Shown: positions 30,801-59,541 of the stretch, piece by piece
Numbering within the stretch: position 1 is the stretch's first letter
Layout: each line of letters opens with the position of its first letter
Source: Podarcis filfolensis
Lineage: Eukaryota
Length of the DNA: 64,000 nucleotides
Strand: one strand, 5' to 3'
Assembly (NCBI GenBank): GCA_964270895.1
Contig: OZ185444.1
Program-made: the position numbers and the translations under genes
The notes under the pieces: generated by a model
Database searches by the model: none
What the model saw: the letters and a program-made list of their open reading frames with translations, nothing else
Told to the model about the DNA's origin: nothing

Positions 30801-31549
30801 TATATTAGCAAAGCTGAAGATCAGTTTTAGGTGATGTACTACTAGGTAAAAAACCCCAAAGCCAAATTAGGTAGTTTCTAATAGGAATTGGGAAATACAT
30901 AACCCACAAAAAGCAAACTCTCTCTTTAGATGGTGGAAAATTCATCTGGTTGTAGATACACACATATAATATCCATTCGGAAAATGCCTTTAAAAAAAAG
31001 TTTTTAAAAATACATTGAGTTTTCCATAAGGCTCACCATTTCCATCTAGTGTCACATTGTATATTGCACTTAAAACACACACAAAACGTTTTCTTTGCAG
31101 CTGTAGAAACTGTTCCTTTTGCTAGATTCCTCCTCAACATGGGAAGCTGTCTTACATCAAGTCAGTTCGGCCCCACCTTGTTCAGTCCTTTTGGCATTCC
31201 TGGATCGAGTTTGCCCCAGCCCTATCTGGAGGTGTCAGGCAGGGATGGAACCCTGTGGCCTTTTACCTGCGAAGCACCTGCCCTACTACTGAGCAGCGGT
31301 AGAAGTTTCAGAAATTTTGCATGCTTGATAGAACTTGTTTTTAAAAATGCTTCCGGTTTTTTCCCCCCTCCAAACCTTTTACTGGCAAGTTAATTCGTGT
31401 TTAAATATACGATATGCATGTTTATTTGGAAGGAAGTCCCCTGAGTTTAATAGGGGCTCCTTCCTAAGTAAATGTGCGTGGGAATGCTTTAGTTCTGTCT
31501 TTTCAGCAACGTGCTTCGGATGCTCCTGTGAAAGATTTATTTATTAACG

Positions 31550-32480
31550 GTCAGAGACAGGCGGGCCAACGTGGGGGTGGGGGGCAGATATTTTAAGCCT
31601 CTGCAAAGGAGTAGCAGCCCGCTACGTGCCTAGGATGGCGCACTGTCCCTTTAAGGGCTCCTCTCCCTCCTTCCTCGCGGCTCCTCCGCGGCGCTCGAGC
31701 ACGCCAGCCTCACCTTCTGCCGATGACATAATTCCTATCCTCTAATTGGCTGCTTCCTTCTTCAGTCACCTTTCTCTGCCCCGCCTGCCCCTTTCCCCAC
31801 CCCGCCTCTCGCCCGTTAGCACCCGGAGTTACTCGACACCCGTTGACGGGCGCTGGCGTCATTCAGTCGCCTCCGCGCCTTCGGATTGGCCGCGCCGCCT
31901 GCTCGTCCCGTAGCTCTGCGTTCTGGTGGGCGGGAGCTTCCGCGGCTGAGAGGAGCTGAGCCGGCGGCGGTGAGGGCCGGGGTTCTTTTTTTTGCGCGCT
32001 CGGGGAAGTTTTCTGTGGGAGGCTGCGGAAGGGGAAGGCGGCCAAGTGCGGGCAGCTGGGATGGAGTCGTGACCAGGTGAGTGTGAGGGAGGCTTCGGGA
32101 GGGAGCGTGCCGGCAGCTCCTCGCCCCGCCCGCCCGCTGAGGGGGGGAATGTCCCTCCATGTATGGGGCAGGGAACCGCCCCTCTGGGAAGCACGAAGCG
32201 GGGCTGCCCCGGTTGCTGGGAGAGTCTGGCCTTGGCTCGCCTCACGCTCCTCCTTTGCCCCGCGGCGGAGGCTGGCGGGAGAACCGCGCCCTCCTTCTCC
32301 CGTCCCACACGAACCACGCAGCCCCCCCTCCGTCGCCCCACGCCGTTCTCCTTCGCAGCGCCCCCTTCCCACGACCGGGCCTCTCCTTCGGGCTACGTGA
32401 CTCTGGCGTGGCCCTCCCGCCCCTTTGCTATTTGCTCGTGAGTAAAACGGCGAATGTTCCGTCTCCCCAGCCCCCAAATA
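31550..32480 (+). promoter_or_regulatory. CpG-island promoter of MRTFA (long isoform)
   Basis: Strong CpG enrichment, GC boxes (CCCGCC at about 31780 and 31801), inverted CCAAT (ATTGG) at about 31746 and 31884, + strand donor CAG|GTGAGT at 32076/32077. Confidence 0.85.
31890..32076 (+). other. MRTFA: MRTFA non-coding exon 1 (start approximate); carries uORF ATG GAG TCG TGA at 32061-32072
   Basis: Strong donor GACCAG|GTGAGT within the CpG island; gene identity from downstream coding exons and synteny. Confidence 0.7.
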
Positions 32481-34508
32481 ATTTGTCTAGAAGAGCCACC
32501 GAAGGTATCCTTTTTCTCCATCAGCCGCCAGCCAGGCTTCTGCTTTTCCCCGTAACGCCCCCCTCCGCTGTGTCATTTCACTGTTTTCCGAATGGGTTTA
32601 TCATCCCTCCCGCTCCACTGTTTTCAGCTATTGGCTTTTTATTGGACAAGAATAAACCTCCAGAATCACCACCACCACCACCAAAAAATTATTGGTTTTT
32701 TTTTTTGTTTTTTTTTTTTTTGGTCTTTGAGACTCTTTTCCTCCCAGAAAAATTTAATTGCAAAGGAAATGTAAATGTACTGGATCTTCTCTATGTAATT
32801 TCAAGAATGCAATATTGCCCCTGATTCAGTTTCAGAATTGTAATCTGCAATCTGTGTGGAAGACTGTTTTGAGAATATGGGCTGAGCTGATCACACCCAC
32901 CCACTGGCACATGTAGGAATCTGCGTTGAGCATATAGATTCAGGATGAATTATCATTTGATGCTTCCCAGAATCCTGTGCTGGAGGGTGGTTGAATGCGG
33001 CTGGCTCATTGTGGGCTGGAGGCCAGCAAGAATACCCTTTGCTAGTACTTTCCCTGCTGCTTAACATCCGAAGATCTGAGCTTGTGAATAGAATCACACT
33101 GGCACTTACAGTTCATCCATAGTTAAGGATGCATCCTCTTTAACAGCATAAAGACATGGGACTCCTCTTGTGTTTACCACTTTGAAAGCATCTGGACATC
33201 ACATGGTAGCAACTTGCAGGAGAGTGAGTGTATTCACTGATTGCAATAAAAGCAGGCTTATGATACCTTAAGGTGGGGGTAGGGAACCTCAGGCCCTGGG
33301 GTGGTGGTGGTTTCCAAATGCATCCTTTTAGGCCTCTCTAGCCAGTCCTTGGGGCTCTGCCCAAGCCACACCTCTTATCAGCCATTTGCCTTCCTTGAGT
33401 GCTTTTGCTTGGCAAGAATTTGTTCTTGAACTGTAGTAATGCTTCTTGTTTGCCTGGATGAAGAGGGCGGGGTGTGTGCATGTTGAGGAACCTCTGGTTT
33501 CTTTGTGGCTTGAATGTACAAATGTAAGCATTGCATCTGTTGCTTTGCCCACTTTTCCACCTCTGGTGTTGCCATGTCTGGTAGGCGAGATCTAGAAGGT
33601 TGCCTGAAAGGCATTGTGGCCCTTAGGCTGAAAACATTTATTATCGCATAAGCTTTCTTGTACACTTCTTGTTTTCAAACACTGGAGTGACTTGTTAGAT
33701 CAGTCCCGTGTTGGTAAGTCTTTATTGCCTAGCTAATTCTGTAGCAAGGGATTTGCATACTTGTTGACCTAGTGAAGGTCTTGAGCAGGAGCCTCCCTTT
33801 TTGTTTCCCAGGGTAGTATCTCAAGAGTGCAGTTCACCAGCTTTGAGGAGTATAGTATGGGAAAATGGTACCTATGAAATTATGGCATGGGATTGTGTAA
33901 CTTGGTGAAATGAAAAGTATAGTATGTGAGTATAGGTGGGCAGAAAATGCATGAGCATGCAAGATTTGGTAGGCATTTTTAATCCAAAGACGAAATAATT
34001 ACATCAAAATTTCCACTGCATTCCATAGTTTGCATCTCTATTTAAGGCACACAGAAAAGAATGTGAAGATTGATATTTCAGGTGTGTAGAAAAATAGTTG
34101 GTATGTGTATAAATATTGATTTTAATTAAAATCATTTATAAACAGCTTGATATTTTAAAAATTGCTCTAAATGGTGTGCAGTATGAAACAAACAATATAA
34201 TTAAAACAAAAATGCAATATAAAACCAATGAATGTCAGTTTTGGTGTCATTGTATACAGATAGAGTATAAGGATGAATAACTTCTAGGTACAAAATATGC
34301 TCAGAAGTAGTTCCTTAATGGATACATAGCAAACTGTACTCTTCATTTGCTTCAGATCATGAAGTTGAAGCCCTGTTGCAGTTGGAGGATGGAGAAAGAA
34401 CTGTGAGCAGCAGGGTGCCCTTTTTCTATAATTGGGATACCCTGGGAAACTCGCCAAGCATATTGCACCTGATGCTGGGTGTGGAGAGTGCACCTGACTG
34501 CTTAATGT

Positions 34509-34642
34509 AGTGTTTCTCAAACTTGGGTCCCCAACTGTTGTTGAACTACACCTCGCATCATCCCTCACCACTGATCCTGCTAGCTTCGGATTATGGGAGT
34601 TGTAGTTCAACTACAGCTGGGGACCCAAGTTTGAGCAACAGT
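34509..34642. mobile_element. Fold-back (hAT-like) squamate MITE
   Basis: Long inverted arms AGTGTTTCTCAAACTTGGGTCCCCAACTGTTGTTGAACTACA / TGTAGTTCAACTACAGCTGGGGACCCAAGTTTGAGCAACA; degenerate relatives near 1830-1960 and 2790-2940. Confidence 0.75.
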
Positions 34643-35351
34643 GGCTTAATGGAACACAGGTGTGTGGGCAGCCAGAGGAAGCTCCATCCACTTTGGTGCC
34701 TGCCCATAAAAGCAAGCCCTGATCATGGGACAGTGAAGCAGCTGGAGAAGATAGGGCAGAGGCTGGAGAAAGAACTGTGAGTGGAGAGGCGGCTTATTTG
34801 TATTAGTGTAATATTTTTATATGTTAATTTTTTTGTAATATTTAGTGTTTGTTTCAATTTTCTGTATACTTCATAGATATGTTTTTTATATATTAAATAG
34901 CGTAGAACTGGTGTAATAAATAAAATTTCACTGATGATACTGCTTCCAGGCCTGTTTCCTGCTTTCTGTGGATAGCTGACTTCATACATGACAGAAATAT
35001 GTTTAGCAAAAACTTGCTCTGCTAATTAAAGTGGGTGCCTAGGAAGTGCAGAATGATTTTTTTGAGGGATATTGCTTATTGGAAGTTTGCACTGCCCATC
35101 TGTTGTCATTATGAAAGCTGAATAACTTGGAGTTTCATTCTTAGTTGAGTTTGAAGTGGATAGTTCTTACATCTATCCTTATGAATCATCAGGTTTTGGG
35201 TCTACTGGGACACTTAAAGAAATCCTTCATGTTGGTAGAATAGTTAATACAATGTATGATGAAAGCTTAAAAGGGAGAAATGGAAGCTAAGGTGGTGGTA
35301 GATTGTAAGCACATGCTATGCTAGCAGAATGTTGAATACTAATAATATTGC

Positions 35352-35543
35352 TAGGAATCTAGTAAATTACCTTATACTGAGTCAGACCTTTAGTCATCTA
35401 GCTCAGTATTGATTACACTGACTGGCAGAGCTTTCCAGGGTTTCTGACAGGAGTTTTTCACAGCCTTTCCTGGAGATGCTGGGAATTGAACCTGTAATCT
35501 TTTGCATGTGAGGCAGATGCTCTAACACTGAACTTATAGCCCT
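35352..35543 (-). mobile_element. Squam3-type tRNA-derived SINE
   Basis: Reverse complement has A-box (AGTTCAGTGTTAGAGCATCTG), B-box (GGTTCAATTCCC) and the body GCCAGTCAGTGTAATCAATACTGAGCTAGATG...GACTCAGTATAAGG. Confidence 0.8.
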
Positions 35544-37039
35544 ACGTATAGCTGGGAATTTGGAAAGTCCAGTGAAGTCCAGATATGCACAGCACTCTCT
35601 CAAGTGAAGCATGATAGCGATAATGCCCTTTGTTACTTGGCCCACCATTGGCTGCTGTAAAAAACTGTCCTTTTTGATGAATTGTTTTAAATATCTGTGT
35701 CTGCTAGTGGTCATCACAACAACCTGTGACAAAGAAATCCATAAATTTTATTACATTATGTGAAGGATTTTCTCATCATGTGCCACAAGTTTGTTGTCTT
35801 TAAGTTCTCTTGGCTGAATTGTACTGAGAATTTTTATTTGCCTCTCCTTGCTATTAGTAGTTTTGTAAACCTTTATCAAATTGAGCCTCACACAAGAACA
35901 TATTTTTTAACCTAAATATTCAGACTTCTTATGAAGAAATGTAGAGGGATATTACTGATTGTTTTAATTTCCCTTTTCTCTATTTTTGTAATTTACTTTC
36001 AGTGAAACTTTAATTCCTTTGTGTTGGTGAGGTCCTACAGGCATTTCATGACTGTTGAAGATTACAGTATCTTTCAATTCATCATTCTGTTAAAACCAGA
36101 TTGCTTGAATTTCAGTGAGACATTCTACATCTGAATATATTGTTTTTACATGTGTTTTTAACTAAAGGAGAAATAGCATGCAGATTGGAAGAGGATGGGG
36201 AAATTAAGTAAAGGAATACTCTGCACACACCAGCCAATTCCAGAGCATGGTGGATGGGATTCAACTAAGTCCAGTCAGTGGAAGCCCTGCACAAGGACTA
36301 CTGCGTGCAATGGGTCTTTTTCCTTTCTCCTCCGTCCACTTTCTCAAAATAGGCTCTGGGATGGTTGGGGATCCCAAATGCTTCCCTGCCAAAACAGTTG
36401 TTTTGGCACAATGTTGAATTCCTCCCATAGTGTTTCTGTGCTTGTGTGCAAGATGTCAGAATGACACAGAATTTGATATTGGTGAGTACAGCATTCTGCA
36501 TGCACAAGGACTTGGTCCTAGGGGTCAGTATGCAAACAGCTATCTGTCCTTTGCTGTGTCTTCCTGCCTAGGCTTTTAATCCCATCAGTTCTTTGCTGCT
36601 TCCTTGTCTCCACTCTTTTGAAATCACATGAAAATATAGGGATGAATTCAGCCTTTGTTCTTAGTTTTGCTGTATATATAAGTTGAAACTGTCTTTATAT
36701 TTTAACTCACTGTTTTGGGTTGCAGCCTTACCTAGGAATAAAGCACTTCAGCTCAGTATAACTTCTGAGTAGACATACCTTGGATTGCATTGCACATTTG
36801 TGGTACTGAAAGTTGTGTTGATTTTAAATAACAGTATAACTTCTAGTATGTTTCCTCTTGCTTGCTCCTCAAGTACTGGAGAAAATAAAGAATCCTTGTT
36901 AAATTCATTTTATTGTGGGCCTAACTTTGGAATGGGCAAATTAGTATAACTTCAGGAGACTACCCAGCAATGAACTCAACTTCCAAACTTCATGTCTTTA
37001 GGAATAGAGAGGATAATAGTGTCTAGTTTGGTTTTTGTT

Positions 37040-37720
37040 TTAAATAACTTTTTATTGGGTTTTATACAAGGATCATAGGAATAATAAATGATACAAATAA
37101 ATAGACCAAGTCTTCTCAATTTGCAGTAATATCTACAACATATGGTCATTATTAATGGTCCATGTGTAAGTTCTTGGCTCGTGAATTGGTCTAAACAAAA
37201 ACAAAGGGGAAAAATGATAGAACAGACTTAACCAATAACATTCAACATCACATAGGTAAATGCCTAATCAGGAATCTTTGTGGTAGTGCTTAGATGAAGT
37301 ATGAGTAATAATCATTTTTCCTATTTATGTTTCCATTGAAATAATATACCATATATTGATGAACATGGGAGTTCAAAGTAGAAATAATAATTTATGTTTA
37401 AATTAACGTTTAGATCAACCAGATTGAACCAAATGCTGATGGAGGGGATTGTTCATTTTCTGGAATACTGACATATGTTATGAAATTAAATCACATGAGG
37501 GTAAAGCCATCTTTCTTGATCTGTCCACATGTCAACCATAGTTTACTTGTTAATCTCTCAAGGAAGGCTGTTTTCCAAACTATTTTGCACCAGTTGTCTA
37601 CCATTGTGCTAGAAAGGTCTTTCTAGTGTCTGCTTATGTTGCATCACGCCGCTTGTAATAAATTACATATTAATTTTTTATTATGCAAATCCTGATTGTT
37701 GTCTTGAAATACATTTAATA
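37040..37720 (-). mobile_element. Decayed L1-clade LINE 3' end
   Basis: Minus strand LICNLLQAA...WCKIVWKTAFLERLTSKLWLTCGQIKKDGF..FITY resembles squamate L1 ORF2 C-terminus; A-rich tail on the minus strand near 37040. Confidence 0.55.
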
Positions 37721-38928
37721 AAGATAATTCAGGTATGACATACAATAGTGTCTAGTTAAACAAAATGCCACTAATCTTGCAAAATGAGATTTCAGTTACT
37801 GCACTGTGTATGAATATTTGAAATTTTGTGGAATTCTTTTTATAAGCATTTTATGGAAAAATAAAATTGATAGTTTGAGGACCATCTTTGTGATACAATT
37901 TTAGAAAAAGGCAAATAGTTTTAACTAGTATATTCGAACTTGCAATTTTAACCTTGTAGTGAATATCAGTTCTTAAATTTAAAAATAATAGTTTGGGAGG
38001 TCTACGAATTTGCTTGATGCTTGTAAACAGCTTGTTTTCCTGTTAATTTTGTGGTATTATGACAAATTTGAAACTGGATACAGTATAGTTAAGCTTTTGT
38101 GGAGTTACAGCAGGAATATAAGGGAGACTGACTTGAGATTAAAATTCCCTTTCACAAAGGAATTCCGAAATATGTTGTGCCACTTGAGACTTTTATTAGA
38201 TGAGCTTTGGACCTGTTGTAAGTATAATTGTGTTACCTCTCTTCCTTAAGCCTTCCCAACTATTCTGGTTTGCCTTGCCCAGTGGCACTTTTCTGTTTTT
38301 TTAAAAAGCTGCTTCATATTGTGTTTTGTTGATCTTACCTTGGTTTGGAGTAATGCAAACATGAATTTCATTAGTTTTAATAGCTGCTAATCAAGCAAAA
38401 AAACCCTGCCTGCTTTGCTGTGTCTGTCACAAATCCATTAGTGGAAAAAGGAAGACGATTGCATACTGGATAGTGACAAGATATCTGTAGTTATTTGCCA
38501 CTAATGTAACCATGGTTCTGGGGTGTTTTCAGTAGTGGGAGAGATTACTCATGGTAATATATGATACATTGGAGTAATTTGCTAGTCTCTGATTACCCAG
38601 GAACAAGGAAAATACATTATGGGAACTTGATTCAGTGTAAAAGCCATTCTTATAGGGAAAGGGAGTCTCTTGTGAGATTAAGTTAAAGGGGGTTCCCTTA
38701 CTAACAACATACGAAACAGATTGCAGTTGGGATAGAGTTGACCTAAGTTTAAAAAATATTGAAGCAAGGATATAATTTTCACAGATAACTTTAACTTGGA
38801 AATAAGGTTTCTAGCTATTGGTTCTTGAATAGCCAATCAGAACAGTAATGTATGCTAGAGATCCCTGATATGGATAGAAAATGTTGAATATTTCATAAGG
38901 GTTTAAAACATCTGAAGGTTATGAAATC

Positions 38929-39420
38929 CCAATTGCACTGGCTGCCAGTTAGTTTCTGGGCCCAATTGAAAGTGCTGGTTTTGACCTATAAAGCCTTAAA
39001 TGGCTCAGGACCACAAATAACTCAAGAACTACTTCTCTCCATATGAACCTACCTAGACCCTGCGGTAATCATGTGAGGCCCTTCTTTGTGTGCCTCTTCC
39101 ACGAGAGGTCTGGAGGGTGGCAACACAAGAATGGGCCTTTTCTGCAGTGGCTCCCCATTTGTAGAATGCTCTTCTCAGGGAGGTACACCTGGCACCTCCA
39201 TTATACACCTTTAGGCGCCAGGCAAAAAGCAAAGCATTCCTCTTCAACCAGGGCTTTGGCAGACTGACATCCTATATGGTTTTAAATGTCTTTATGGGAG
39301 AGGGGTTATATTTTGTTTCATTTTTGTTTGTGTTATTATTATTATGTCTTTTGTGTTTTTAGCTTGTATTTTTATGCTGTGAATCGCCCTGAAGGGCAGT
39401 ATACATAGTTAATAAATGAT
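38929..39420 (+). mobile_element. L2-clade LINE 3' end
   Basis: QLHWLPVSFWAQLKVLVLTYKALNG ... AFSAVAPHL.NAL, then T-rich 3' UTR ending tgtgaatcgccctg. Confidence 0.8.
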
Positions 39421-42244
39421 GATAATAATCCAGCCCTTTGCACACATGCCACTTACAACAGAGTGGCCCACTCAGTGTGCATGATAGTGTTTCAAAGAAA
39501 GTGCACCCTTTAAAGAGGAGTTTGTGACGTGAGAAATGTTTAAAGTGGGCATTTCAAGTGCTTTAAAAATCTAAGCTCTGTCAGAACGCCCAGATGCAAA
39601 GTGTTTTAATAACTTTATTTTTGAGGTCTAAATGAAAGGTCTTTAATGGGATATAAGAAGCTAACTGACCTGTATTGTGAGGCTAATGAGTGGAAAGAGG
39701 AGTCTTTTGGACTTCTATCTGTCGCACTTCCATTGCGGTTTTATTCTGCTTATTGTTACTTTAGTAACCTATGCTTGTTGTGTACTAACATTTCTTGGTT
39801 GTAATAGTTTAGGATTCTTCATTCTTTTTTTTAAATAAAATAAAATTCCAGTTATGTCCTATAGCAGATGGAGTGATTAAAATTAAGAGTTGCAACTCTG
39901 AAAAGAGTATATACTTCAGTGCAGCTTTGGGCAGTGCACACCTTCATTAGGACTTTGCAACGCTACCAAGGACTAGCTGAAACTGCTTGCTGACGCTGGG
40001 CTATGCTTGCTTTTGTCATTTTATTTTGAAGGTAGGTAGATGTCTGCTATCGCCTTAGTATGTTTTTGCAGTGTGACTACTTTGGTGACATTCTTTAATT
40101 ATAGAGAAGGCAGCTTTCATTTTCTGCCTCTGGCCTTCTTAATTTTGGAATTCTAATTAAACATGTGAAAGTTGGGTCAGCAGTTAGTGTTTTACACAGA
40201 GCAGCTGAAACTTACCTTTCTTAGGAACCTTCAAGTTCACATGTACATTTTGGATTCAGGTAATTTGAGAAACTATGGTAGCAACAGTGAACTCCATTCC
40301 AACATGCACATTTTAAATTTGTTTTTGTTAGTGGGATAGCCTTTGCTTGCTTGCTTTTTAGCCTTTGCTTTCTCAGAACCTTCTTTCTTGCCATTGTAGA
40401 AGTTACAGGCATTTTATTTTCTGATTGAATTTGCTGTTTAGAAATCAAGTAGGGAATTTGATCTGATGACATTTCATTTGCTTTTTACTTTACCTTGCAT
40501 CTCCATTACCTTGTCGCTGTCAGAAGTATTCCCATTTTCTTATTCCCAAACAGACAAAACCTCTTCAAAGTGGGCTTGATGTTTAAAGTTGGAGACTGTG
40601 CAGGGTGGAGATGTTGAGTTGCTGAGCTTTGAAAAGGGCTACCAAGCATTTCTTCCTTGGTCTGTTCTGCCATTGTCTACAGATGACAAATTATGACTGC
40701 ATTTAAAGATTTGGGTGCCACAGTACTTGGGTGCCTGGAAGCTTTCAAAAAGTCCTACTTGCTGTGTGTGTCTTGCCTAACTAGGAGGGGAAAGCTAACT
40801 CCTTTCCAGCTGTTCCTACCATGTGACAGGCTTTTTTTAAAAGTGTGGGAGTGTAGGGGTGGGGTCAAGAGCAGAGACTTTGAGATGGAAAGGGAGGCCT
40901 TATGGACTAGAGGTTCATTATTCTTGCTGTACAGGAATTCATAACTTTGATTTGTGGTTTTCATATTGGGGAATAGAGGGAGGGACTCTTCCTTCCTTCC
41001 ACATAGACAACAGAAATCATAATTAGAAACTTGGGATTGTTAAGTTTAGATGAAGGATCCTAGACTCTTGATGGTTGTAGGGAGAGCTATTTGAGCTTTT
41101 AAATATGTAGGAGAGAAATATGTGGTGGGAGAAAGAGGGATATGAAAATTAAACCCCTGTTGTGGCATTCAGATCAGAGGCTCTTTCTTAATGCCAGTTG
41201 GAGAATTTCCATGTTGTTCAACTACTAAACTCTGAGTCACCACTAGCAAAGGCAGATAACCCATTGTAATTGCTAGAATACCAACAGCTTAGCTGGAACA
41301 TGTAAACAATGGTGTATAAACTTTTCCACTGAATTATAAGTTTATGAGCAAGACAAGACTTCTGCATCTCTTACAGTTGACGTTATTTTCTCAGGGGGAG
41401 GGGACTTGTGAAAGTTATTTTATTACAGTACAGTCATACCACACAGCTGGAAAAGAGGTGGGGGAAAACTTCATAGTGGTTCTGTTACCAGCTGTGTAGT
41501 TGAGCTGTGGACATAACATGGCACTATTAAGAAAAATAAAATACATGAGATGATTAAAAATTGCTTTCTTACATATGTTTATTGACTAATCATGTAAGCT
41601 GGGGTGAGGCAGAAAATATGTTGGGATCTGTTGGAATTTGGAACTTAAGTTGTTACTCATTTCCATTGTATGCCCAAGTGGTCTAAAGGGCTTTACCTTT
41701 TCTTTTTTTATTTCTCATTTCTATTTACAATATTTCAAGACCCTCATATTCTGGAGAAAAGAGTTAAGGAAAAGGAGCTTTTATATACCGGTAAATGCTT
41801 TACAGAAGGGCTATCTTAGCAGCTAAGACTAATGGCTAAGCCTTCACTGCAGTAAAGTGTCTCCTACATTGCCTTCTGTTAGAGTCCCAAGCTAGATTTT
41901 TAAAGCTGCAGCATGCCATTGACTTACTAAGTATTACTGGATAGATGTCTATGCCAGAAAAGAAGCAGGTATTGGGAAAGAAGTGCTTTAGCATATCTTC
42001 TCCTGAGGCCTTTAACGTCCACCTCTTGGCAAACTGGCTTGCTAATTATCTGTTGTGGGACTACCCAACAGGCATAAAGGAAGTGGTTGTACGTAGTGTA
42101 GTCATAACCCCTCACCTTTCTGGATATTCCTGGGAACTTCCATGGTAGTTGACTGAGTGATCTTTGGCAGTAGGGAAGTCAATTAAATCTGATGGCTGAG
42201 GCAGTACACTGCACACCCTTGTCTGGAAGATTGTGAGAAGTTAG

Positions 42245-42374
42245 ATAGCCCAGTTGGGTAGAGCATAGTGCAGGCACGATCTTCGTAACGGGCAGCTGCA
42301 TATTCCTGCATTGCATTGGGGTTGAACTAGATGATCCTCAGGCTCCCTTCCAGCTCTACGATTCTTTGATTCTA
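42245..42374 (+). mobile_element. Internally deleted tRNA-derived SINE with CR1-like tail
   Basis: ATAGCCCAGTTGGGTAGAGCATAGTG head and CAGCTGCATATTCCTGCATTGCA..GGGTTGAACTAGATGATCCTCAGG..CTCTACGATTCT tail. Confidence 0.7.
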
Positions 42375-43167
42375 TTTCACCTTTTGTGACTGCTTAGAGC
42401 TATTGAAAGAAACTAAGTTGTGTTAAGAGGCAGGAAGGAATGGTGCTCAAAAAACATGTCATTTTAGATTGCTACTGGCATTTAGGCTAAAATGTGGTAA
42501 AATGTTACCAAAGTACAGGGACCACATCCAGTTGTGTGCATTAAAATTCAATGTTAGACCTATTCTTTAAAAACTTTTTTCTTTTAATGTGGTTTCTCAT
42601 TTGTTCAGTTCTGGCTCTAGAATATGAAGATGCAGAAGCAAAAATCACATTAAATATATCATTCTTGTGATTTGTAGCTAATGCACACTTGTAGAAGCAA
42701 GTAAAACTTAGTCTATTATTATGTCCCTGGCAGCTTCTTCCAGTTGAGAGCTCTTGCTCTTCAAAGATTAAAGCATTCCTTTGCACACACAAATTAATGT
42801 AATGAAAATTTCAAACTGAAATGTTCTGGTGGTGATTACCATCAGGTTCTAGCAACTTTACAGTAGTTTATACCCTTATTTTTCATGAAAACCTGGGCTG
42901 TCACCTAAGTACCAATGCTGCCACATGATGAAGGTTGGAAAAGATAAATGCTAACAGGATAAATATGGGGTTGTATATTTACAACCTTTCCACCTGGCCT
43001 AGGGGGCGAGGCCCAGACTCACCAGCCCTACTGAAGAAGCTCCTCAAGAGGTCAGAGGAACATCATCCTGCCATTGTTTTATTGATTTAATACGCTATAC
43101 ACCACTTTGAGGTTTTTATTAAAAATATAAAGCGGTACAGAAATTGAAAAATTAAAAAAAAATAAAA

Positions 43168-43467
43168 AGAAGGTCGGTGGTTCAAATCCCCGTGATAGGG
43201 TGAGCTCCCGTTTCTCGGGCCCTTCTCCTGCCAACCTAGCAGTTCGAAAGCACATCAAAGTGCAAGTAGATAAATAGGTACTGCTCCGGCGGCAAGGTAA
43301 ATGGCGTTTCCGTGTGCTGCTCTGGTTCGCTAGAAGTGGCTTAGTCATGCTGGCCACATGACCCAGAAGCTGTACGCCGGCTCCCACTGCCAGTAAAGCG
43401 AAATGAGTGCTGCAACCCCAGAGTCGTCCGTGGCTGGACCTAATGGTCAGGGGTCCCTTTACCTTTT
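43168..43467 (+). mobile_element. Sauria SINE, 5'-truncated
   Basis: GGTTCAAATCCCCG..GGTGAGCTCCCG..CTAGCAGTTCGAAAGCAC..GGACCTAATGGTCAGGGGTCCCTTTACCTTTTAC terminal tail. Confidence 0.9.
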
Positions 43468-43673
43468 ACTCAGAGTAGATTGAAATTAATATACCTAAGT
43501 TACTAAGGTCCATTCATTTAAACAAATCTACTCCTGAGTATGACTGGCTTGGCTCATGATCTGTATTTGGTGCACTATTGGTATGTTCAAAGTGGGATAT
43601 GTCTAGGGTTAAGGAAATTTAGATATAGTTCTCTTTGGTAATACTTTTTTCAGATGAAGCGGCTTGTATTGTA

Positions 43674-43915
43674 CAGTGGTACCTCAGGTTAAGTACTTAA
43701 TTCGTTTCGGAGGTCCGTACTTAACCTGAAACTGTTCTTAACCTGAAGCACCACTTTAGCTAATGGGACCTCCCATTGCCACCGTGCCGCTGGAGCACGA
43801 TTTCTGTTTTCATCCTGAAGCAAAGTTCTTAACCTGAAGCACTATTTGTGGGTTAGCGGAGTCTGTAACCTGAAGTGTCTGTAACCTGAAGCGTATGTAA
43901 CCCGAGGTACCACTG
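43674..43915. mobile_element. Tc1/mariner-pogo-type MITE (242 bp)
   Basis: TA|CAGTGGTACCTCAGGTTA ... TAACCCGAGGTACCACTG|TA. Confidence 0.92.
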
Positions 43916-44558
43916 TAATTCCTCATGCATAAGGCATGTGGAGAGTGCACTGCTATTCTAAATTTGTGCACTACTCCATATGTTGCTGCAGTAGCCACTT
44001 AGCAGAATCTGATAATCTGATAGTCCCATTATTGCATAGACATATTCAAGTATATACTCCCATCTAAAACTGTTGCTGCTTTGTGTCACTTAAGACTTGC
44101 TTAGGCTGCATTTAGTATGCTGCATCATTTACTGTATTTGTAAATAAAGACTTTGTAATTTACAAAAACTTTATTTGTAAATAAAGACTGTTTCTGTATA
44201 CATTGTACACTCAAAATTAACCAGTAAGATGTTAAAAGAATCACAGATTGTCTCAACTGGGATTTGATCCGCATATGCAAACAAACCAGGACTGGATTAA
44301 ACCAAGAAATAATTTATTAAGTTGTGCTTGTGAAGGGAGGAGTATTGTTCGTGATTCTCCAAACCACAGGTAGAGGAGGTGTCATCTGAATGTAGCCTTC
44401 AAATACTGTCTGAATCCTGACATTGCTTTAGAGGGGATGCCAAACAACTTAAATTTGGTGGCAACAAGATGGGAGCTGCTTTGTTTTTTATCTATAGGTA
44501 ACATGGCTTAAGTCTTATAGAAGAGATTTGATTTGTGTGATTTCTGTTTCTTTTGTAG

Positions 44559-44612
44559 TGATTGGAGCGCCTGGCATGGAACAGAACTGGATTGATTTGT
44601 GGGAACTATAAG
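44559..44612 (+). other. MRTFA: Putative MRTFA 5'UTR exon 2 (54 nt) containing uORF MEQNWIDLWEL* (44576-44611)
   Basis: Good acceptor tttctgtttcttttgtag and donor AAG|gtttgt; mammalian MRTFA has a short 5'UTR exon in this position (recalled, not aligned). Confidence 0.65.
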
Positions 44613-44672
44613 GTTTGTAATCTTCCAGTTGCATTGCTTCCTTTTAAAATTAATTGCATGCCAAGGCCCATT

Positions 44673-45387
44673 TGATGAATAAGACACGTGGACACCAGTC
44701 TTTTAGGTTAATGGGCTAATAAAGGCCACAACATTATTGGTTACAGAATGTGAATGGTATTGGCTTAGGCATTGGACCCAAACCGACTATATCTGGCTCC
44801 TGCCTGCCATGCAGGGAGTCTCACAAGGGTTAACCACCAGTAGGGGGAGCACCGTTGATGTACATCAACTCGGATCTCCCCTCAGGGTCACCGGTGTGGT
44901 CGTTCCGTGGCCCTAGCCTCTCCCTGGGCTTTGGACAGGAACCACGACCCCTGGATTCTTTTAACGGAATACCCTTAAAGGGGAGAGGGGCAGGTGATGG
45001 CCACAACTTCTCCTCCCATCAACCAAGCTTTTCCAATGCCTAACCACCAAACCTTACAAAGTTGTGACAATTTGCTACAAGGTAGGTGAGAACCAAGTGG
45101 CTGGTGCCAATCTGCCAAGTGGAAAAATTCCTACCAGGCCCCTTCAACAGGCGACCAACCAAGGTCCATAGCAAGGTTAAGTTGTCGAATGCAAGAAGAA
45201 AGGGCGGGAGATCCGCTGAAGCAGGAAGCAGAAGGAAGAGCTCCCAGCTTGGATTGGCTGGCTGCGGGCGTGACGCGGGCCGCGACTCCCTGATGATGCG
45301 GGGGACTTGACTCGCCACCACTAAGTGCGGGAAAGTGTGAGGCCAGCCCGCAACCATGCCCTCCTGCAAAGGAGATTGGCTTTGACA
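44673..45387. mobile_element. Putative solo LTR (~715 bp), probably antisense
   Basis: Begins TG and ends CA, imperfect 4-bp flanks catt/tatt, CpG-rich relative to intron, CCAAT and GC boxes near the right end, AATAA-like signal on the minus strand near the left end. Confidence 0.5.
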
Positions 45388-45894
45388 TATTATAGTTGAG
45401 AGGGGTTGAGGGGAACCTTATTGATACTAGCTTTTTGGATCTGTGTGTAAAAAATTAATTACTATTGTGTATTTTTATACCAAACACAAAATCTGGTAGC
45501 TATTTCAGAACCCATGGTTTTCATGGGCAATGTGAACTTCCTGGAAAATTTTGAATCAGAAAGTTTTTTAAGGAAAACATTTTTTTGGAAAATTTCTTTG
45601 TGCCTTAGATTTTTTTTGCATAATTAATTATAGTGTTCAAACTAATACTTCCCCAGAACAACTCATCTTTAGAAATGTACTTGGGCCCATGGAAAAACAT
45701 AGCTGTGGAAAATTCTTCATCCCACATCACTGATATGTTTGTTAAGTTGCTACCTCTCATGATTTGAAAGAATCACAGACATGCTTGCCTCACCTGACAA
45801 AGGCACTGATGCTGATAATCCAGAAAACTCAAGGTCAGGGGCTCCATGTTCTCATAATCATCCACCTGCCCAAAGGTTCACATTAAGCTGTAGA

Positions 45895-46381
45895 TCGGGG
45901 TGGGGAATCTTTATAGCCCACAGGCCAACTTAAACAGGTGGGCAGTCCAACTCACCTGTCAAAGTCGTTTGTGCAGCACTTTCCAGGCACCCAACAGTGA
46001 CCTAGTTGGCAGGCACTTGGGAACCTCAGTGCAAGGAGCTTTGGAAGCCTTATCTTCAGTACTAGGGAAACTCTGAGCACAAGTCTTGCAAAGCTTTTAA
46101 GCGAAGTGCTTCCCAAATGCCTTACAGCCAGCTGGCATGTGGGAAGTGCTTCATAGTGCCAAGTAAAGTGTTGGCAAAGCTGCTTTCTTCAGGGATTGGA
46201 TATGTGATCAAGTTCCCCTTAGGGAACTGTTGCGTAGCCAAACCCCCTGCATCTCTGCGCCACACCTGATGTCACATATAATATCATGTGAAAGGCAGAT
46301 GAGTGAGGTTTGGGAAACCTGTAGCTTGTGGTTCAGCATGGGTCCCAATTTGACCTGTCAGCCAGAGGTCCCCTAACCCTG
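45895..46381. mobile_element. hAT-like non-autonomous element
   Basis: Ends tagatcGGGGTGGGGAATC ... GAGGTCCCCTAACCCTGctcta resemble hAT MITE termini (CAGGGGTGGGGAACC). Confidence 0.5.
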
Positions 46382-48900
46382 CTCTAAATAAATCACCCCA
46401 TTGGGACCTGCAGTAAGTACTTGATTAGAAATGGCTTCCTGGTGCACGTCTGCTCCATGTTAAAATGTTAGATGCCCGTTTGTCCCTAACACTTTATATG
46501 TGTATATGGCAAAGCATGAGTCAGCAAACATTTCTGCACAAAGTGTGAGCTTGCCTATGGAGATGGCAAAACATCTGTGTTTCTACAGATGGCAGTTTAA
46601 GAGGAGTAGGATGTATGGAGGAGAATAATTTTTGTGGAGGGGAGGGTTGATAAGCTGATAAGATTCTGGAAGAGTTGATTGTTAAGAGCTTGGGAAATCT
46701 TTTTAAAGTCTCTCCCCCCCCTTTTGCTTAATAAACAAATTACCACAATTTGGGGGGGAACAACCTTAAATGTTTAAAAAATACTCATTCATAGATCCAA
46801 GTCTGTGTGCAGGTTGGAGAGTTTTGGATGGTTTAGTATGACAGGTTAATAGACTTCCTGTTGAAATACAGTGGTGAGTCAAACAGCTTTGTGCAGGCTG
46901 TGCTCCTGAAGGGTGTGGATCAGTGCTGAGCAAGTGATGCCTGAACATCATTTGCTAAATGCTGACCTATGATTTGGTTGGACTGGGTATAGAAAAAGCA
47001 TTTTATATTGGGCTTAAGGAAAAAAGCACCACTGGTAATTTTGGAAGCTCTAATTGCTGTGGCTGCATGGACTTCTCACTGAAGCCACACCCATGTGATC
47101 CATCTGTAGAGGGCCATTGTCATTGTGTCCTGCATTTGGGTTTCCTGTAGAGATCTGGCTGGCCATTGTGGGAACCAGTGCTTTTTAGTGGAATGGTATC
47201 TAGAAATGTGCTTCCAGTTATAAATGCATTTCCTCCCTCCTGGGTATGTGTCCACATACTTGGTACAGTAGGCTGACATAAATACTGTTAATATGTGCAG
47301 GTGAACCCAAATCCGAGTCATTTAAATGAAGCTTAAGTATTTATAGGATCACAGCCTTTTCAGATTTTCTTGCAGGGGCACAACTTGTTTTATTACTTCA
47401 TCCTTTCATATCGCAGCAATGATATTTCAGGTGATCATTGCATGTTGTTTATTTATTCCTTTTGAAAATAACGAAGAGGCAAGGTCCAGTGTTGCAGACC
47501 CCCTTCCTGTATCAACATGCCATCTGTCAAATCCTTATCACATTTGCTCCTCTGTCTACATGGATTGCAAAACTTGTTTTGGTCTTTCTCAATCAAGGGC
47601 CTGCAGAATACTTCCTCAATCAATGGATATATAGTTAACATCTGTTGCTTCTTACAACAAACAGAAGCTATAGGACTGATAAAATAACATCAGTGTTGCA
47701 ATTTCCACTTAACATTATTTCTGTGATCACATGCTTTTAGAGCTTGGGAGTGGAAATTTGTGCAACTCGGAAAAAGGACTTTCAAGGTGTCCACATTTCT
47801 GTGCTACCTCTCCCCTAACTTACTGAATATGCTACAAGGGAGGCGTTACTTAGAGACACAATAATTTTCTTTTCGCCTTCTGCTTCTGTTACTGGACTGT
47901 ACACTTTAAAGAGCAACAGTATAATTATTTCCAGTCATACAATCTACAGTAGCTATGCTAGTATGCTATACAACTTTAATATTAGCAATATTTGATTGCA
48001 TTGTTGGCATTTGATTGACTAGATAGTGCCATCCTCTGGACCTGTGGTTAGACTAAACCAGGGTTTCTAGGAAAGGCTTGTTAAGTTAAAATACATATTT
48101 TTATGTATCCATGTGTACCTAAAGACTGAACAGGCGTTGAATTTTCTGTAGACTGGGAGTTACTTCAACTTCCTTGAAGCCTTCCCAGTTGAGTTTGGCA
48201 GGTTTCTGTGTTCTACAATCAAAATTTAGCCCTTCCATGCAAGAAATCCAGTCCATGTACAGCTTTCCACAAGGCAAAATAGGTGTAAAGTAGCTGTAAT
48301 CAAGTAATTCTGTGAACTGTTCAGTTAGGTTGTATGGAACCCATTTTTTGTGTGTGCTCTGTATATGATGGAGATATGTTAGATGACTTCATTGCATAAC
48401 CATATAAAACATTAGTGTGCTTAAATATAGTTGGTATGAATTTGCCTTAAGACTGGTGCTGTTTGCTCTTGGTTGGGGAATGACAAGTCATTGTCCCTGT
48501 GGCATTTCTAATCTGACAAGGAAAGAACCATAGGGATGCAGAAGTTCCTTGTGAAACAGGTGCTTGTACCATTGATTTTCAGCACTGCCAGTAGAAGTAC
48601 TGGATGTACTGTTTCCCTCCTTGCAGTGCTGGGGAGCGACAGGATAATAGGGAAAGCAATGGCTTCTTATACCATTCAGGTTGTACACTGAAAATGAGTG
48701 CACACTTTAGTTCCTTACTTGGAGAATTATTCAAAAGACCACACTCAGGTAATTGTCTGCATAGAGAAGTTCCAAGAAAGAGCATAGCAAGTAGCAGAGT
48801 GGACGTCCCTCTATAAAATAGAACTTCCCTAAATATGCAGATCTCAGTCTATAGTATGCATCTGGGTTCCTTTGGGAGTAAGGGCAGGATAAATGGAATT

Positions 48901-48932
48901 GAATGAATGAATGAATGAATGAATGAATGAAT
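48901..48932. repeat. (GAAT)8 microsatellite
   Basis: Direct reading. Confidence 0.95.
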
Positions 48933-51564
48933 AAAAGAAAACTATGTTGATTGGACTTTCCTGGCCTTATTTTTCAGTTATCTGAACGACCTGTCATGGC
49001 TCTAGGCAGTGCATATTTTTTAATGTATTTTGTTCCTAGATTTAATCCTAAGAATTTCCAGTTGTAGTGTCATTAGTAACAGGGATAGGGAAAGACTTGT
49101 GCCTGAATCTCTGAAGAATTGATTGGAGCACTGATATTTCTGGGTAAATACCCAGTTTTAGGTGATTGTTTTCTGCTTATTAGTAGACTATCAACAACAT
49201 GGTGCTGTTTCCTACTTTTCTGAATTAGGGTTGTCTAGAAAGAATGTTGTCCTCAGCTATAACACCACTGCTTCTTCTTTATCTGTTTAGCTTAAAACTT
49301 GATCCACTTAACACCACTCTGCCTAAAGATTACTTTAGATTTTCTTTTGGCTTCCTGATCACAGTTGCCAGAGACATGTAACAGATGGCTTTTTTTAAAT
49401 GCAAGAAAAGTAGTTACTGCTTCCCAAAATAGCCTACTTCTGCATGCCACCTGCTGCTGCTAGTTGATGCAGGTTGCTTAGCAATTCTTAAATGAGTAGG
49501 AAATTGCCATTACCCTGGTAACCACTCCTAAATAGAAACTGACTTAAAGGAACGAAGAATAAAGAGAAACGTCCATAGCAAGTTTGCTAATGGAATTACT
49601 TCCCCACCTTTCTGTCTTAAAATAATTTGCTAACAACAGAAACCTTGATTGCTGGGGATATGTGGAGAATGACAGTATGCTTTATAATGCAACTGCATCC
49701 TCAGACTTGTAAAGTATTATGCAGTTTATATGGGGGTCACAAACCTTAATCAGTGATCCAGTTTTAAATGGGGGGCTATGAATTCAACATTTTAAAGGCT
49801 TTTTTTTTGTTCTAGCATGTCCCTATTACGTTGACTGAGCAAAACAATATCAAATATATCCCCTCCCAAAAGATGAGTGATATCTTACAACTTAATTCAA
49901 GCTATGTTATGATTCATTGTTTCCAAAGAATATCCATATTCTAATTTTTATAATGTATAAACTGATTAATGAAGAAAAATTCTTTTCATCAGTTGACAGC
50001 CTTAGTTTTTCCACTGTTTCAAGGCATCATTGTGGGTGGATGTTTTTTAATTCCTGTAGAAAAAACCTTGAAATTAGCTGGAGTTATTACTGACAAGTAA
50101 TCACAGGAGTGTTATTACTCTTCATGCATAGTCCCTGTTAGAAATGGGTTTAAAATGTAAGAAACATACTTGTAGAGTTCAGCTTTATAGAAAATTACAG
50201 AACATGCCATATGATTATAGGCTTGCTCTGTGTCCCCATAGCCTTACAAGCTTTGCTGCTATGTGTGAGGACATCTGAAATGAAGAACAGAGGGGTATCA
50301 TAGCCAGTAATGCATAACACCCCAGATCAATTTTCTCCAAGTTCATTCCCACCCAAATTCAGCCCAAAATTAGTCAGTCTTCAACTCTCATTTTACTCAT
50401 TTCCCTTTTGCTCCCAGCTCCAAGAGAAAGAGGAAAGAAAATCTCTGTATTTGTCTTTTCCCCTCATGCAGTCAAAAGTGCAGTAAGCTCAGCCTGGCAA
50501 AGACCCACAAGCCATTAGTACAAACTCTGAGATGGAGGAAACAATGAACAAGGCAGGGAAGGGACTTTCTACCTGAACAGTACATGCGAGTAAGAACTGC
50601 CTGCTCGTACACCTCGCTGTGGGACCATACAAGCTGATAAATGGGCATAAAGGAAGTATTATTGTGATAACGTATGAGAAAGCACTGAAATAGCATTAAT
50701 CTTGTAAATTGGTGGGCGTGGGGGAAGAGGACCAGAGTGGGCTGTTTCCTGGTCTTGTGCAGGCTGTTTCCTGGTGCTTTTTGAGGGAATTTATTAGCTC
50801 TATTAAACTAATAAATTAGAATTATAAAATTGATAACCAGTAAGAATAGTACCAAAATCCACCCCAGTCACCTAGCACTTGTCCAGTGCTGGTGGACTCT
50901 GGTTCCAGTCTAGAAATAACCTAAGCTGTAAGGGCTGCTGTGATGGGACTTGCTTTGCAATTTTAGTGCTCAGTTGGTCAACATTGTCATTGATCCTGCG
51001 GTACATCAGAGACCGCTGTGTTTGTAAGAAGAGGCCCAGCACAGCTACACTAGGTCTTGTAATGCATGCCTGAAGGCTATTCTGAGCTCTTGAAAGTTTT
51101 CTATAAGGATTTTGCAATTTGCCGTGGAGTTTGGGCAGGGCAAAATTAGCTTGTTTCAGGATATGCTGAGCCTTTCCAGAGCCAAACTCAGCAGTTCATT
51201 CAGTTCCTAGTTGTTAATAGTAGCTTGTTTCCTCTTTTGTTGTGTATATAGGCTTATTTGATTATATTACACCTTTAAATAAAGTTAATGTATCCAGATT
51301 ACTCTTATGAATGTGACTTTTCTGAGGTATGAAATGGAAGAAGGAAGACATTTCTAGCTGCTTTGAGCTGTAGATGCTCATAGGTTTTGTATGCAGATTG
51401 TTTGTGCCTATTTATTTTGAACTTGAAACAACGTGGGGGACCCTGCAAAGAGCTACAGCTAGAGAAGAGGCCTACTTCTTGGAAGGTAGAATAATATATA
51501 TATATATATGCCATTGTTCAACTCTTATATGTTCTGTCTTCAGGTTGCCATCACGAAAGCCAAA

Positions 51565-51805
51565 GTGGATTTCTCCGGAGTGCTGTGCCTGCCCCCTTCC
51601 GTCGCTGCTGCAAATGGGCTGGACGGAGGAGGGGCCGGCGAGAATGAAGATGAAGCAGTGTTGGTGTCTCTTTCGGCGGCACCAAGCCCCCAGAGTGAAG
51701 CTGTTGCCAATGAGCTGCAGGAGCTGTCCCTGCAGCCTGAGCTGACCCTAGGTCTCCATCCTGGCCGGAACCCTAACCTTCCTCCACTAAGTGAGAGGAA
51801 GAATG
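51565..51805 (+). CDS. MRTFA: MRTFA long-isoform first coding exon (exon 51544-51805), non-AUG start: V/MDFSGVLCLPPSVAAANGLDGGGAGENEDEAVLVSLSAAPSPQSEAVANELQELSLQPELTLGLHPGRNPNLPPLSERKN(V)
   Basis: cttcag acceptor at 51543, gtaagt donor at 51806; PQSEAVANELQELSLQPELTLGLHPGRNPNLPPLSERKN matches the mammalian MRTF-A N-terminal extension; no in-frame ATG; GTG at 51565 in AAAGTGG context, alternative CTG at 51589. Confidence 0.93.
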
Positions 51806-57676: not shown

Positions 57677-57722
57677 ATGATTCTGCTGGAACCAGAAACT
57701 ATATTGATGGCAGTTCAATCAG
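57677..57722 (+). CDS. MRTFA: MRTFA short-isoform (MKL1_S/BSAC-type) alternative first coding exon: MILLEPETILMAVQS(V)
   Basis: ATG ATT CTG CTG GAA CCA GAA ACT ATA TTG ATG GCA GTT CAA TCA G|gtaact; phase-1 donor identical to exon 3; resembles mammalian MTLLEPEMLMMAVQS. Confidence 0.88.
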
Positions 57723-59541
57723 GTAACTTCCCTTTAGTTAAACAATGTTAATGTGCAAGCAGTACCAGGATCTGGGGAGTGGAACAGAATGTAGAGGTGA
57801 TTTTTTTAAAATAAAAAAAGGTTGTATGTATTTCAACTTTGAGATTTCCTCCCCCATAAGTTCAAATGTTTGAACAATGAGATCACTTCTCTGAATTTCA
57901 AGCAAATAGCTGCCAACCCTTGGGTTCTTTAATGAACTAAATTTTACTGGGAAAGACTCCTCTCCTGATTACTGGCTGTGAGCATGCAGGCTACAGGTTT
58001 TAACTTTTGAGGAGTTCTGCTGGGAGCACTTGGACTAATCTTTGGGAATTTGCTTCTGCTTTTTATAGAATTTTACTTCTACAAAAATTGTTTTTTTGCT
58101 TACGTTTCAAATTCATTGTATGACAGCATGGTTAGTAAAAATTCTTGTAAAGATCCACTCTCATATGATTAAACTGTGTGAAATGAAGAGATTTGATACC
58201 TTTCCAAAGTAAGGATGTACATATACAGTACCTTTTTCCTGTAAAAACACTTGCAGTGGAAATTGAGTGCATGCCCTGTTAAAGTTAGGGATTGTCTAAC
58301 GTGTTGTCTAATGGCAATGCAATATTCTCTTGTTTACAAGAGGTCCAGAGAATCAGCTCTCTTGTGCTAGTGGAATGTTTTGTTCAGATAACTCCTTAAG
58401 AAAGCTGTTTATCCCTTGCACACTGGACAATTCCTACATTCTTTTTTTTAAAAAAGATGAGAGTGGGAATAATATACAAGTCCCAGTTGTTCGGGGTGGG
58501 GTGGGGAATTGCCTTCTTTACTTTGTTCTTTCTAAAAAGTTATGCTAGGGTCTGCAGCCAGGCTAGTTCTTCTAGACATTTATGGATCAGTAATAAAACA
58601 CAGGAAGTGAAATTTGGAACAAAGGACAATTTTTAGAGAGTGGTATACTGTTATGATCTGTGTTGGGATTGATGGCTCCTGTTGGGGCATGTAGGAGAGG
58701 GATTGGAGCAGGAATAGCAAAGAGTCTGTCATTCATTGTCGATTTTTAAAGGAATTTTTACCAAGACCTTTTGTAAGTGCCACAGGGTGTACTGGAGGGT
58801 GCACTGGCAATCCCAAACATGTCTGAACATGTTGTCCAAACCTATCCTCATGGTTTAGCTCACTCCAGAATAACCAAAAGCTGTAAACCAAGAACCAACA
58901 TTGGATATGGCTTGTGGTTAGTCTGGAGAGAAGTAAACAATGAATTGCAGTTTGTTGGACACACCAAGCAATGACAGCTTAGCAGAATGATGGAATGAAG
59001 GGGCTGTGATCTCCTCAAATGACCACATGCTAACACATTGTACTAAGCCACAATTTGGCTTAGCTTGATGTGTTAACTAGGCCAACATGAGCCAGGAAAC
59101 TATGGCTTAAATCCTGCTTGCAATCAAGTGTCTGATCAGGGTTCATTAACCTGAAGAGAGCCATACAGTTGTAGTTTGAAGCTGTGTGTGTTTAAATTCT
59201 GTAACGCTAGTGATTTTTTAAAATAATATAAAGTAATTTTTGAATGTGGCCCTCCTCTCTCAACCATTTCCACTGGAAATGCACTAAAGTCTAATGCACA
59301 CTATTATAGGATGGTGTATGAAACACAATTTATGAAATTATTTGGCATTAAATATTTGCTGAAAGCTACTTGCTTTTTTAAAAAAAGCCTTTACTAAAAA
59401 CAACTTGAGTGCTGTAGCTCTGTCAGTGTTTGGTTTATATGAGTAGATAAGTTTCCGTAAACCTTGTTGCATGTGATCATATGTGTCAGGTTCCTTTTTT
59501 CTGTTTTAAAGAAACTAGTTCCAGTTATTTAAATAGATTCT

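Follow-up and report, generated by a model that had tools for sequence, protein, structure and literature searches.

The 5' end of the MRTFA gene lies in a 64,000-nucleotide (nt) stretch of contig OZ185444.1 from the lizard Podarcis filfolensis, hereafter the window, and all coordinates are positions in it. Its long isoform would be translated from a messenger RNA (mRNA) whose 5' part is assembled from three exons. The second of these, a small exon of 54 nt, contains an AUG in strong context that opens a short upstream open reading frame (uORF). This upstream AUG is conserved in lizard, birds and mammals. The third exon is the first coding exon, in which translation most likely starts at an invariant GTG codon followed by a predicted hairpin. 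RNA data support the second exon in the lizard and in a mammal, and show its absence from the leader of another species. We consider it probable, though well short of assured, that this exon is a cassette leader exon whose uORF dampens translation of long-isoform MRTF-A.

Anatomy of the MRTFA leader

The gene was identified from the peptide encoded by exon 3. A search with the translation of this exon returned 33 short products of 86-100% identity, including annotated skink, swallow and vole fragments. The peptide is 86-93% identical to squamate, bird and mammal sequences that correspond to MRTFA/MKL1 N-termini. It forms a conserved extension at the N-terminus and leads on into the RPEL1 exon. 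The king cobra product P0041, annotated as 'MKL/myocardin-like protein 1', runs from the exon 3 peptide into the RPEL exon, and the complementary DNA (cDNA) products P0042 and P0043 also extend into VLQLKLQQRR..., with a Pfam RPEL match. By sequence, the locus is the 5' end of MRTFA, long isoform (MKL1_L / FLMKL1).

The features of the leader are listed in Table 1. The observed/expected CpG ratio is 0.73-0.95 in 31250-32500 (500-nt windows) versus 0.05-0.2 outside. The donor of exon 1 matches the consensus at nine of nine positions and is the sole candidate with a score of at least 7 in 31800-32150. Position 31960 denotes the opening of the main frame in a transcript that lacks exon 2, and is not a mapped 5' end or transcription start. 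Exon 2 has an acceptor of the polypyrimidine-TAG type and is separated from exons 1 and 3 by introns of 12.5 and 6.9 kilobases (kb), respectively.

Table 1. Features of the MRTFA leader and the start of the coding region in the window (splice junctions are marked by a slash)
Feature	Position	Strand	Details
CpG island, presumed promoter of the long-isoform MRTFA transcript	31250..32500 (about)	+	guanine-cytosine (GC) fraction 0.49-0.68
Exon 1, 3' portion (putative)	31960..32076	+	donor CAG/GTGAGT at 32076, inside the CpG island
uORF1	32061..32072	+	ATG GAG TCG TGA (MES, stop); TGA 32070-72; context gggATGg
Exon 2, untranslated putative cassette exon, 54 nt	44559..44612	+	acceptor ...tttcttttgtag/; donor AAG/gtttgt
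uORF2, 11 codons	44576..44611	+	MEQNWIDLWEL, stop; context ggcATGg; TAA 44609-11
Exon 3, first coding exon of the long MRTFA isoform	51544..51805	+	acceptor ...ctgtcttcag/; donor ATG/gtaagt
GTG, most likely start codon of the long isoform	51565..51567	+	context GCCAAAGTGG
Predicted GC-rich hairpin	51586..51640	+	begins 18 nt after the GTG; RNAfold, RNAalifold
CTG, start assigned in mouse/rat work	51589..51591	+	leucine initiator; inside the 5' arm of the hairpin
First AUG after the GTG, out of frame (+1)	51614..51616	+	in the predicted hairpin loop

Both leader exons contain a uORF, and in both the AUG is flanked by G at -3 and G at +4. The AUG of uORF1 is the only ATG in 31724-32076. In the spliced leader, 21 nt separate uORF1 from uORF2, and 22 nt separate the stop of uORF2 from the GTG. 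uORF1 and uORF2 are read in one common frame, which is not that of the GTG at 51565. From the stop of uORF1 to the GTG the distance is 79 nt with exon 2 and 25 nt if exon 2 is skipped. Upstream of the GTG, the first stop in the main frame is a TGA, which is the first codon of exon 2. Splice sites, uORFs, gaps and frames are all as an earlier note on this DNA had given them, every coordinate having been checked. Membership of uORF1 in the mRNA would depend on the position of the transcription start and on use of the donor at 32076.

Within one species, the two uORFs are no more than chance would provide. When exon 2 or the final 117 nt of exon 1 is shuffled with its composition retained, about 42% of the resulting sequences have a closed uORF, and 23-33% have an ATG with a purine at -3 and G at +4. 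What makes uORF2 noteworthy is its conservation across species, and that alone.

The general layout is familiar from mammals. In human MRTFA, the first two exons are untranslated, and the variants TV1/3/4 are reported to use a GTG in exon 3 as start codon (PMC8079280). The rat FLMKL1 coding sequence was cloned from CCCCCTTCCGTCATT, directly after a CTG regarded as a leucine initiator, following mouse work (PMC3821035). Human MRTFA variant 1 (MKL1_L) and rodent FLMKL1/MAL(fl) thus resemble the lizard locus in having two untranslated 5' exons and a non-AUG start in exon 3. The start codon named is GTG in the human work and CTG in the rodent papers. Two untranslated exons before the first coding exon are found in the human paper, in a mammalian cDNA and, through one read pair, in the lizard. 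The earlier note knew of no description of this layout in reptiles. The reptile locus is indeed newly described here, whereas the three-exon leader and the GUG start were already known in human. The human and rodent papers are silent on uORFs, on the AUG of exon 2 and on any hairpin past the start codon; none of the contigs compared here was taken to be human. In the literature searched, no paper ties MRTFA or MKL1 to uORFs, and a search for either name with uORF or non-AUG returned a 2021 review alone. The conserved exon with its upstream AUG and the frozen hairpin are modest additions to the known layout.

Exon 2 across amniotes and in RNA

Homologues of exon 2 were found in six further species (Table 2). 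All genomic homologues have AG/GT borders. In a seven-species alignment, the longest invariant block of the exon is ATGGAA, which comprises the start of uORF2. In all seven species where exon 2 was found (7/7), position -3 of the upstream AUG is a purine and position +4 is G. The alignment across species, which the earlier note had proposed, bears out the conservation of this AUG in lizard, birds and mammals.

Table 2. Exon 2 and uORF2 in seven amniotes
Species or contig	Sequence type	Exon 2 (nt)	uORF2, up to its stop
Lizard (window)	genomic	54	MEQNWIDLWEL
Swallow L003	genomic	60	MEVSWVCRNCE
Bird-like contig L006	genomic	64	MEVSWVCSWEL
Antbird L011	genomic	64	MEVSWVCPWEL
Mammal L001	cDNA	62	MEFNFICLWEL (ATG GAA ... 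TAA)
Vole L004	genomic	55	AUG retained, stop lost; runs into exon 3 out of frame
Scotinomys L013	genomic	55	ME (ATG GAA TAG)

The length and position of uORF2 are also retained in most species. It has 11 codons and stops 22 or 26 nt before the GTG in the lizard, swallow, antbird, bird-like contig and mammalian cDNA (5/7). The swallow keeps 11 codons despite a 4-nt deletion, by means of the second stop, in another frame, of its TGAGTAAG tail. Amino-acid conservation of uORF2 beyond nucleotide conservation was not found. A main coding sequence that starts in exon 2 was considered and rejected. The lengths of the exon (54, 55, 55, 60, 62, 64 and 64 nt) differ by non-multiples of three, and the in-frame stops differ among species.

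Reads of the lizard RNA sequencing (RNA-seq) run X24, about 12% of which was read, and contigs of runs X2, X9 and X13 were mapped to 44200-44999. One read pair of X24 lies on exon 2 alone, with zero depth in the intron, and each read continues past the exon into sequence that does not match the flanking intron. The coverage, inferred from bin depths, spans approximately 44557-44615, which is two and three extra matching letters beyond the two ends of exon 2. These overhangs fit an upstream exon that ends in AG and a downstream exon that starts with GTT, as exons 1 and 3 do. The orientation of the pair indicates RNA of the + strand, provided that the library is of the common stranded type. The support for exon 2 in lizard RNA is positive though thin. 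The mapped region contains exon 2 and its immediate surroundings, and the lizard data show inclusion only.

Within the same mapped region, positions 44701-44776 attract many short contigs of three RNA-type runs with 95-99% likeness and high word depth, and the surrounding intron is empty. This segment is probably a dispersed transcribed repeat, separate from exon 2.

Evidence for the complete leader comes from a mammal. In the Logan cDNA contig L001, exon 1, the 62-nt exon 2 and exon 3 are spliced together. The species is presumably not human, since the SGSM3-like reading frame of the contig differs from the human protein. This frame, an SGSM3-like RabGAP (MSGSHVPSACGPFSALTPSMWPQE...), occupies L001:467-2552, after MRTFA exons 1-2-3. 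SGSM3 adjoins MRTFA in human in convergent orientation, so L001 would be a chimera, a misassembly or a rearrangement. The three-exon leader proposed earlier is therefore upheld as regards exon 2, which is real, conserved and present both in lizard RNA and in L001; the lizard junction 32076-44559 is a predicted one.

A leader without exon 2 was also found. In the rodent-type ENA cDNA L014, the mammalian end of exon 1 (...GGCGAACGAGGCG) is joined straight to exon 3 (GTTACCATC...). The resulting leader of 117 nt is without an AUG. Leaders with and without the uORF exon thus both exist in nature, in different species. The skipping of exon 2 that the earlier note envisaged does occur, at any rate in this rodent-like cDNA. 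A further cDNA, L015, begins in intron 2 and is uninformative on exon 2.

The probable GTG start codon and the predicted hairpin behind it

The start of the coding region was examined in a gap-free alignment of exon 3 from 13 sequences, which include the lizard, a skink, a cobra, a turtle, four birds and five mammals. The GTG is invariant (13/13) and lies inside AAAGCCAA(A/G)GTGGAT, with the context GCCAA(A/G)GTGG. Exon 3 of the lizard contains no in-frame ATG. The main frame therefore has only a near-cognate start, as had been claimed before, and at the level of sequence a non-AUG start in exon 3 is well founded. GUG or CUG starts are known from EIF4G2/DAP5, FGF2 and MYC.

The substitution pattern changes at the GTG. 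Four codons at the start of exon 3 alter the amino acid freely (V/A, A/T/V, I/N/V and T/A), and codons 10, 11, 13 and 16 after the GTG show synonymous variation only. The coding signature thus begins at the GTG, which favours the human assignment of the start over the CTG and bears on the disagreement between the CTG of mouse and rat and the GTG of human.

A main start of the long isoform at the CTG (51589) instead of the GTG (51565) appears rather unlikely, and is the strongest of the rivals considered here. The position of this codon follows from the rat clone, which begins at CCCCCTTCCGTCATT. Under this alternative, the spacing between uORF2 and the start would be 46 nt. In its favour, a leucine/CTG initiator is given in the rat and mouse papers, where cloning of the coding sequence begins with the bases that follow that CTG (PMC3821035), and 12/13 species have the codon. 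It is TTG in the skink, however, and is buried in the predicted stem. Codons 10, 11 and 13, which lie between the GTG and the CTG, vary only synonymously. The context of the GTG is better and invariant, and the human work names the GTG (PMC8079280). Both codons may be used as starts.

Two other AUG codons are found near the start. The first AUG after the GTG, at 51614, is kept in 12/13 species, with AAG GGG in Scotinomys; its conservation is accounted for by the Asn-Gly codons (AAT GGG) that it overlaps. In exon 3 of the turtle Chelonia mydas (L012:10444-10446), which contains GTG ATG TGC, an in-frame ATG lies six codons after the conserved GTG. The long isoform of the turtle could start at this AUG.

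A GC-rich hairpin is predicted downstream of the GTG. The segment 51560-51650 folds with -39.4 kcal/mol (z = -2.2). Across 13 species, the 20 pairs of the hairpin are paired in 99.6% of 260 pair cells. Three C-to-U substitutions keep G-U pairs, one pair is broken in the turtle, and compensatory changes are not found, so covariation cannot confirm the structure. The coding stretch of about 55 nt at 51586-51640 is almost frozen across amniotes, including four-fold degenerate sites. Of the codons for invariant residues, 2/13 vary synonymously inside the hairpin and 30/40 elsewhere in exon 3 (Fisher p=2e-4). An Rfam scan of 31000-58000 matched no family.

Known hairpin-enhanced weak starts would share with MRTFA, if its predicted stem forms, a near-cognate codon in optimal context that precedes a stable GC-rich stem. 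Kozak reportedly observed in 1990 that a downstream hairpin best aids weak start codons at roughly 14 nt. In MRTFA the spacing is 18 nt, close to that optimum but not equal to it, and the stem is predicted only and is located within the coding sequence.

Proposed control of long-isoform translation

The reading that we favour combines these elements. Exon 1 in the CpG island and the small untranslated cassette exon would precede exon 3, where translation would begin from the invariant GUG in its optimal Kozak context. When exon 2 is included, its strong upstream AUG would divert most scanning ribosomes into the 11-codon uORF, which terminates 22 nt before the GUG. This distance would be too short for efficient re-initiation, and exon 2 would thus act as a constitutive damper of long MRTF-A. 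Skipping of exon 2 or leaky scanning would bring ribosomes to the GUG. The conserved hairpin 18 nt past the GUG probably slows the scanning 40S subunit and thereby aids the weak start codon. A partly similar case is MDM2, whose long and short 5' untranslated regions are leader isoforms with and without uORFs that encode the same protein and would be expected to differ in translational efficiency. In MDM2 the leader is chosen by promoter choice, whereas MRTFA would use a putative cassette exon and has a near-cognate main start.

Several observations weigh against exon 2 being a damper, in addition to the CTG named in the rat and mouse papers. BLAST, an nhmmer profile of the seven exons and motif scans detected no homologue of exon 2 in the skink L002, the cobra L010 or the turtle L012, where the flank examined extends to about 10 kb upstream of exon 3. 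Where the exon was found, it lies 9.7-11.1 kb upstream of exon 3 in birds and about 29-30 kb in rodents. Rodents alter uORF2, to two codons in Scotinomys and to an overlap with the start in the vole, so its length and position are not strictly required. In lizard RNA, only one read pair supports the exon, drawn from the roughly 12% of one run that was read, and the contigs of X2, X9 and X13 show nothing on exon 2, a coverage gap that proves nothing. Inclusion (L001) and skipping (L014) were seen in different species, never within one. The hairpin lacks compensatory covariation and its z-score is modest. Our inferences are that ribosomes translate uORF2 with a repressive effect, that the hairpin folds and promotes initiation, and that exon 2 is under splicing control.

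It is unlikely, in our judgement, that exon 2 is conserved for non-translational reasons, such as splicing signals, an intronic DNA element or mRNA stability, with a uORF of little effect. Such an explanation would accommodate the closed uORFs that arise by chance in about 42% of shuffles, the loss of the peptide in the swallow and rodents, and the shifts of uORF length in rodents. Moreover, termination before many exon junctions could make transcripts with exon 2 targets of nonsense-mediated decay. It does not readily explain that the most conserved block of the exon is the ATG and the next codon, in strong context in 7/7 species, or that the swallow has held 11 codons through a frame change.

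The earlier note proposed instead that uORF1 and uORF2 form a delayed re-initiation switch of the GCN4/ATF4 type, through which stress raises long MRTF-A. In that model, 40S subunits re-scan after the three-codon uORF1, and phosphorylation of eIF2-alpha leads to bypass of uORF2 and a start at the GUG. The lizard leader resembles those of ATF4 and GCN4 in that a very short first uORF precedes a second, longer one before the main start, both here in strong context. In addition, the leader with exon 2 has 79 nt between the stop of uORF1 and the GTG, and the AUG of uORF2 is conserved. The spacing of the uORFs, however, is 21 nt, far below the roughly 90 nt (ATF4) or more (GCN4) that underlies delayed re-initiation, and would be too short for ternary-complex reloading to become rate-limiting. 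The last uORF is mostly non-overlapping in MRTFA: there is no overlap with the main frame in 5/7 species, nor with the two-codon uORF2 of Scotinomys, and an overlap is present only in the vole. The main start is a GUG, and re-initiation at a non-AUG codon 22 nt past a stop should be poor. The literature searched likewise offers no link between MRTFA or MKL1 and uORFs.

The first uORF is not conserved either. Exon 1 contains no ATG in the mammalian cDNAs L001 and L014, and a conserved short 5'-proximal uORF that would permit re-scanning was not found. In the antbird, a candidate exon 1 (L011:9950-10030) lies at the edge of a CpG island and has the donor CCGT/GTAAGT. Its cggATGg, 25 nt before the donor, continues without a stop into the frame of uORF2, so that a fused uORF of 26 codons is predicted. 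Such a frame, once split, could have left the lizard uORF1 as a remnant. A MAFFT alignment of the GC-rich exon 1 ends of lizard and antbird gave no convincing homology of their upstream AUGs. The tandem layout is thus not conserved, and the re-initiation switch built on it is quite improbable.

A conserved-peptide uORF, in which the nascent ME....WEL would halt terminating ribosomes and obstruct scanning, perhaps when a metabolite is sensed, is highly improbable: ME and the final WEL before the stop are identical in the lizard, two birds and a mammal, with the last Leu encoded by four codons (CTA, CTC, CTG and TTG), but this Leu signal is weak, as 6/8 YTN codons encode Leu, and the peptide is frameshifted to MEVSWVCRNCE in the swallow, cut to ME in Scotinomys and read through in the vole, and its middle varies freely.

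If the uORF of exon 2 is instead a damper, its consequences concern the dosage of MRTF-A. MRTF-A is an actin-sensing SRF coactivator with relevance to fibrosis, metastasis, megakaryocyte maturation and immunodeficiency. Studies of its control have so far centred on actin binding and nuclear shuttling, and in the papers found, the odd start codon has been treated as a curiosity. We tentatively suggest, as a possible but doubtful generalization, that amniote MRTF-A dosage is set by a translational module about 300 million years old, composed of a cassette exon with an upstream AUG, a GUG in perfect context and an invariant hairpin. If so, the balance between the long three-RPEL isoform and the one that a downstream promoter supplies with an AUG start would depend both on splicing of the 54-64-nt exon and on how stringently the cell selects start codons (eIF1/eIF5, eIF2 availability). 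The cassette exon, the GUG and the frozen hairpin would then add a translational layer to isoform choice and dosage. If the uORF is inert, the result is merely a correct annotation of the leader of a known gene in a reptile.

The downstream AUG-started isoform has its own first exon in the window. Positions 57678-57723 (+) read ATG ATT CTG CTG GAA CCA GAA ... CAA TCA G/gtaact and encode MILLEPETILMAVQS. This is the alternative first coding exon of the MKL1_S/BSAC type (human 'exon 3''), which begins with an AUG and matches exon 3 in splice phase. The gene would thus also make an AUG-initiated three-RPEL isoform from a downstream promoter. An exon of this type (exon 3' / BSAC type) is common to the lizard and to human and rodent MRTFA.

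Two minor observations concern exon 3. The annotated Naja naja fragment P0034 contains the exon 3 peptide twice in tandem, which points to a duplication at this locus or to an artefact of assembly or annotation in that genome. In the lizard, an (AT)8 microsatellite occupies 51494-51509, about 35 nt before the acceptor of exon 3.

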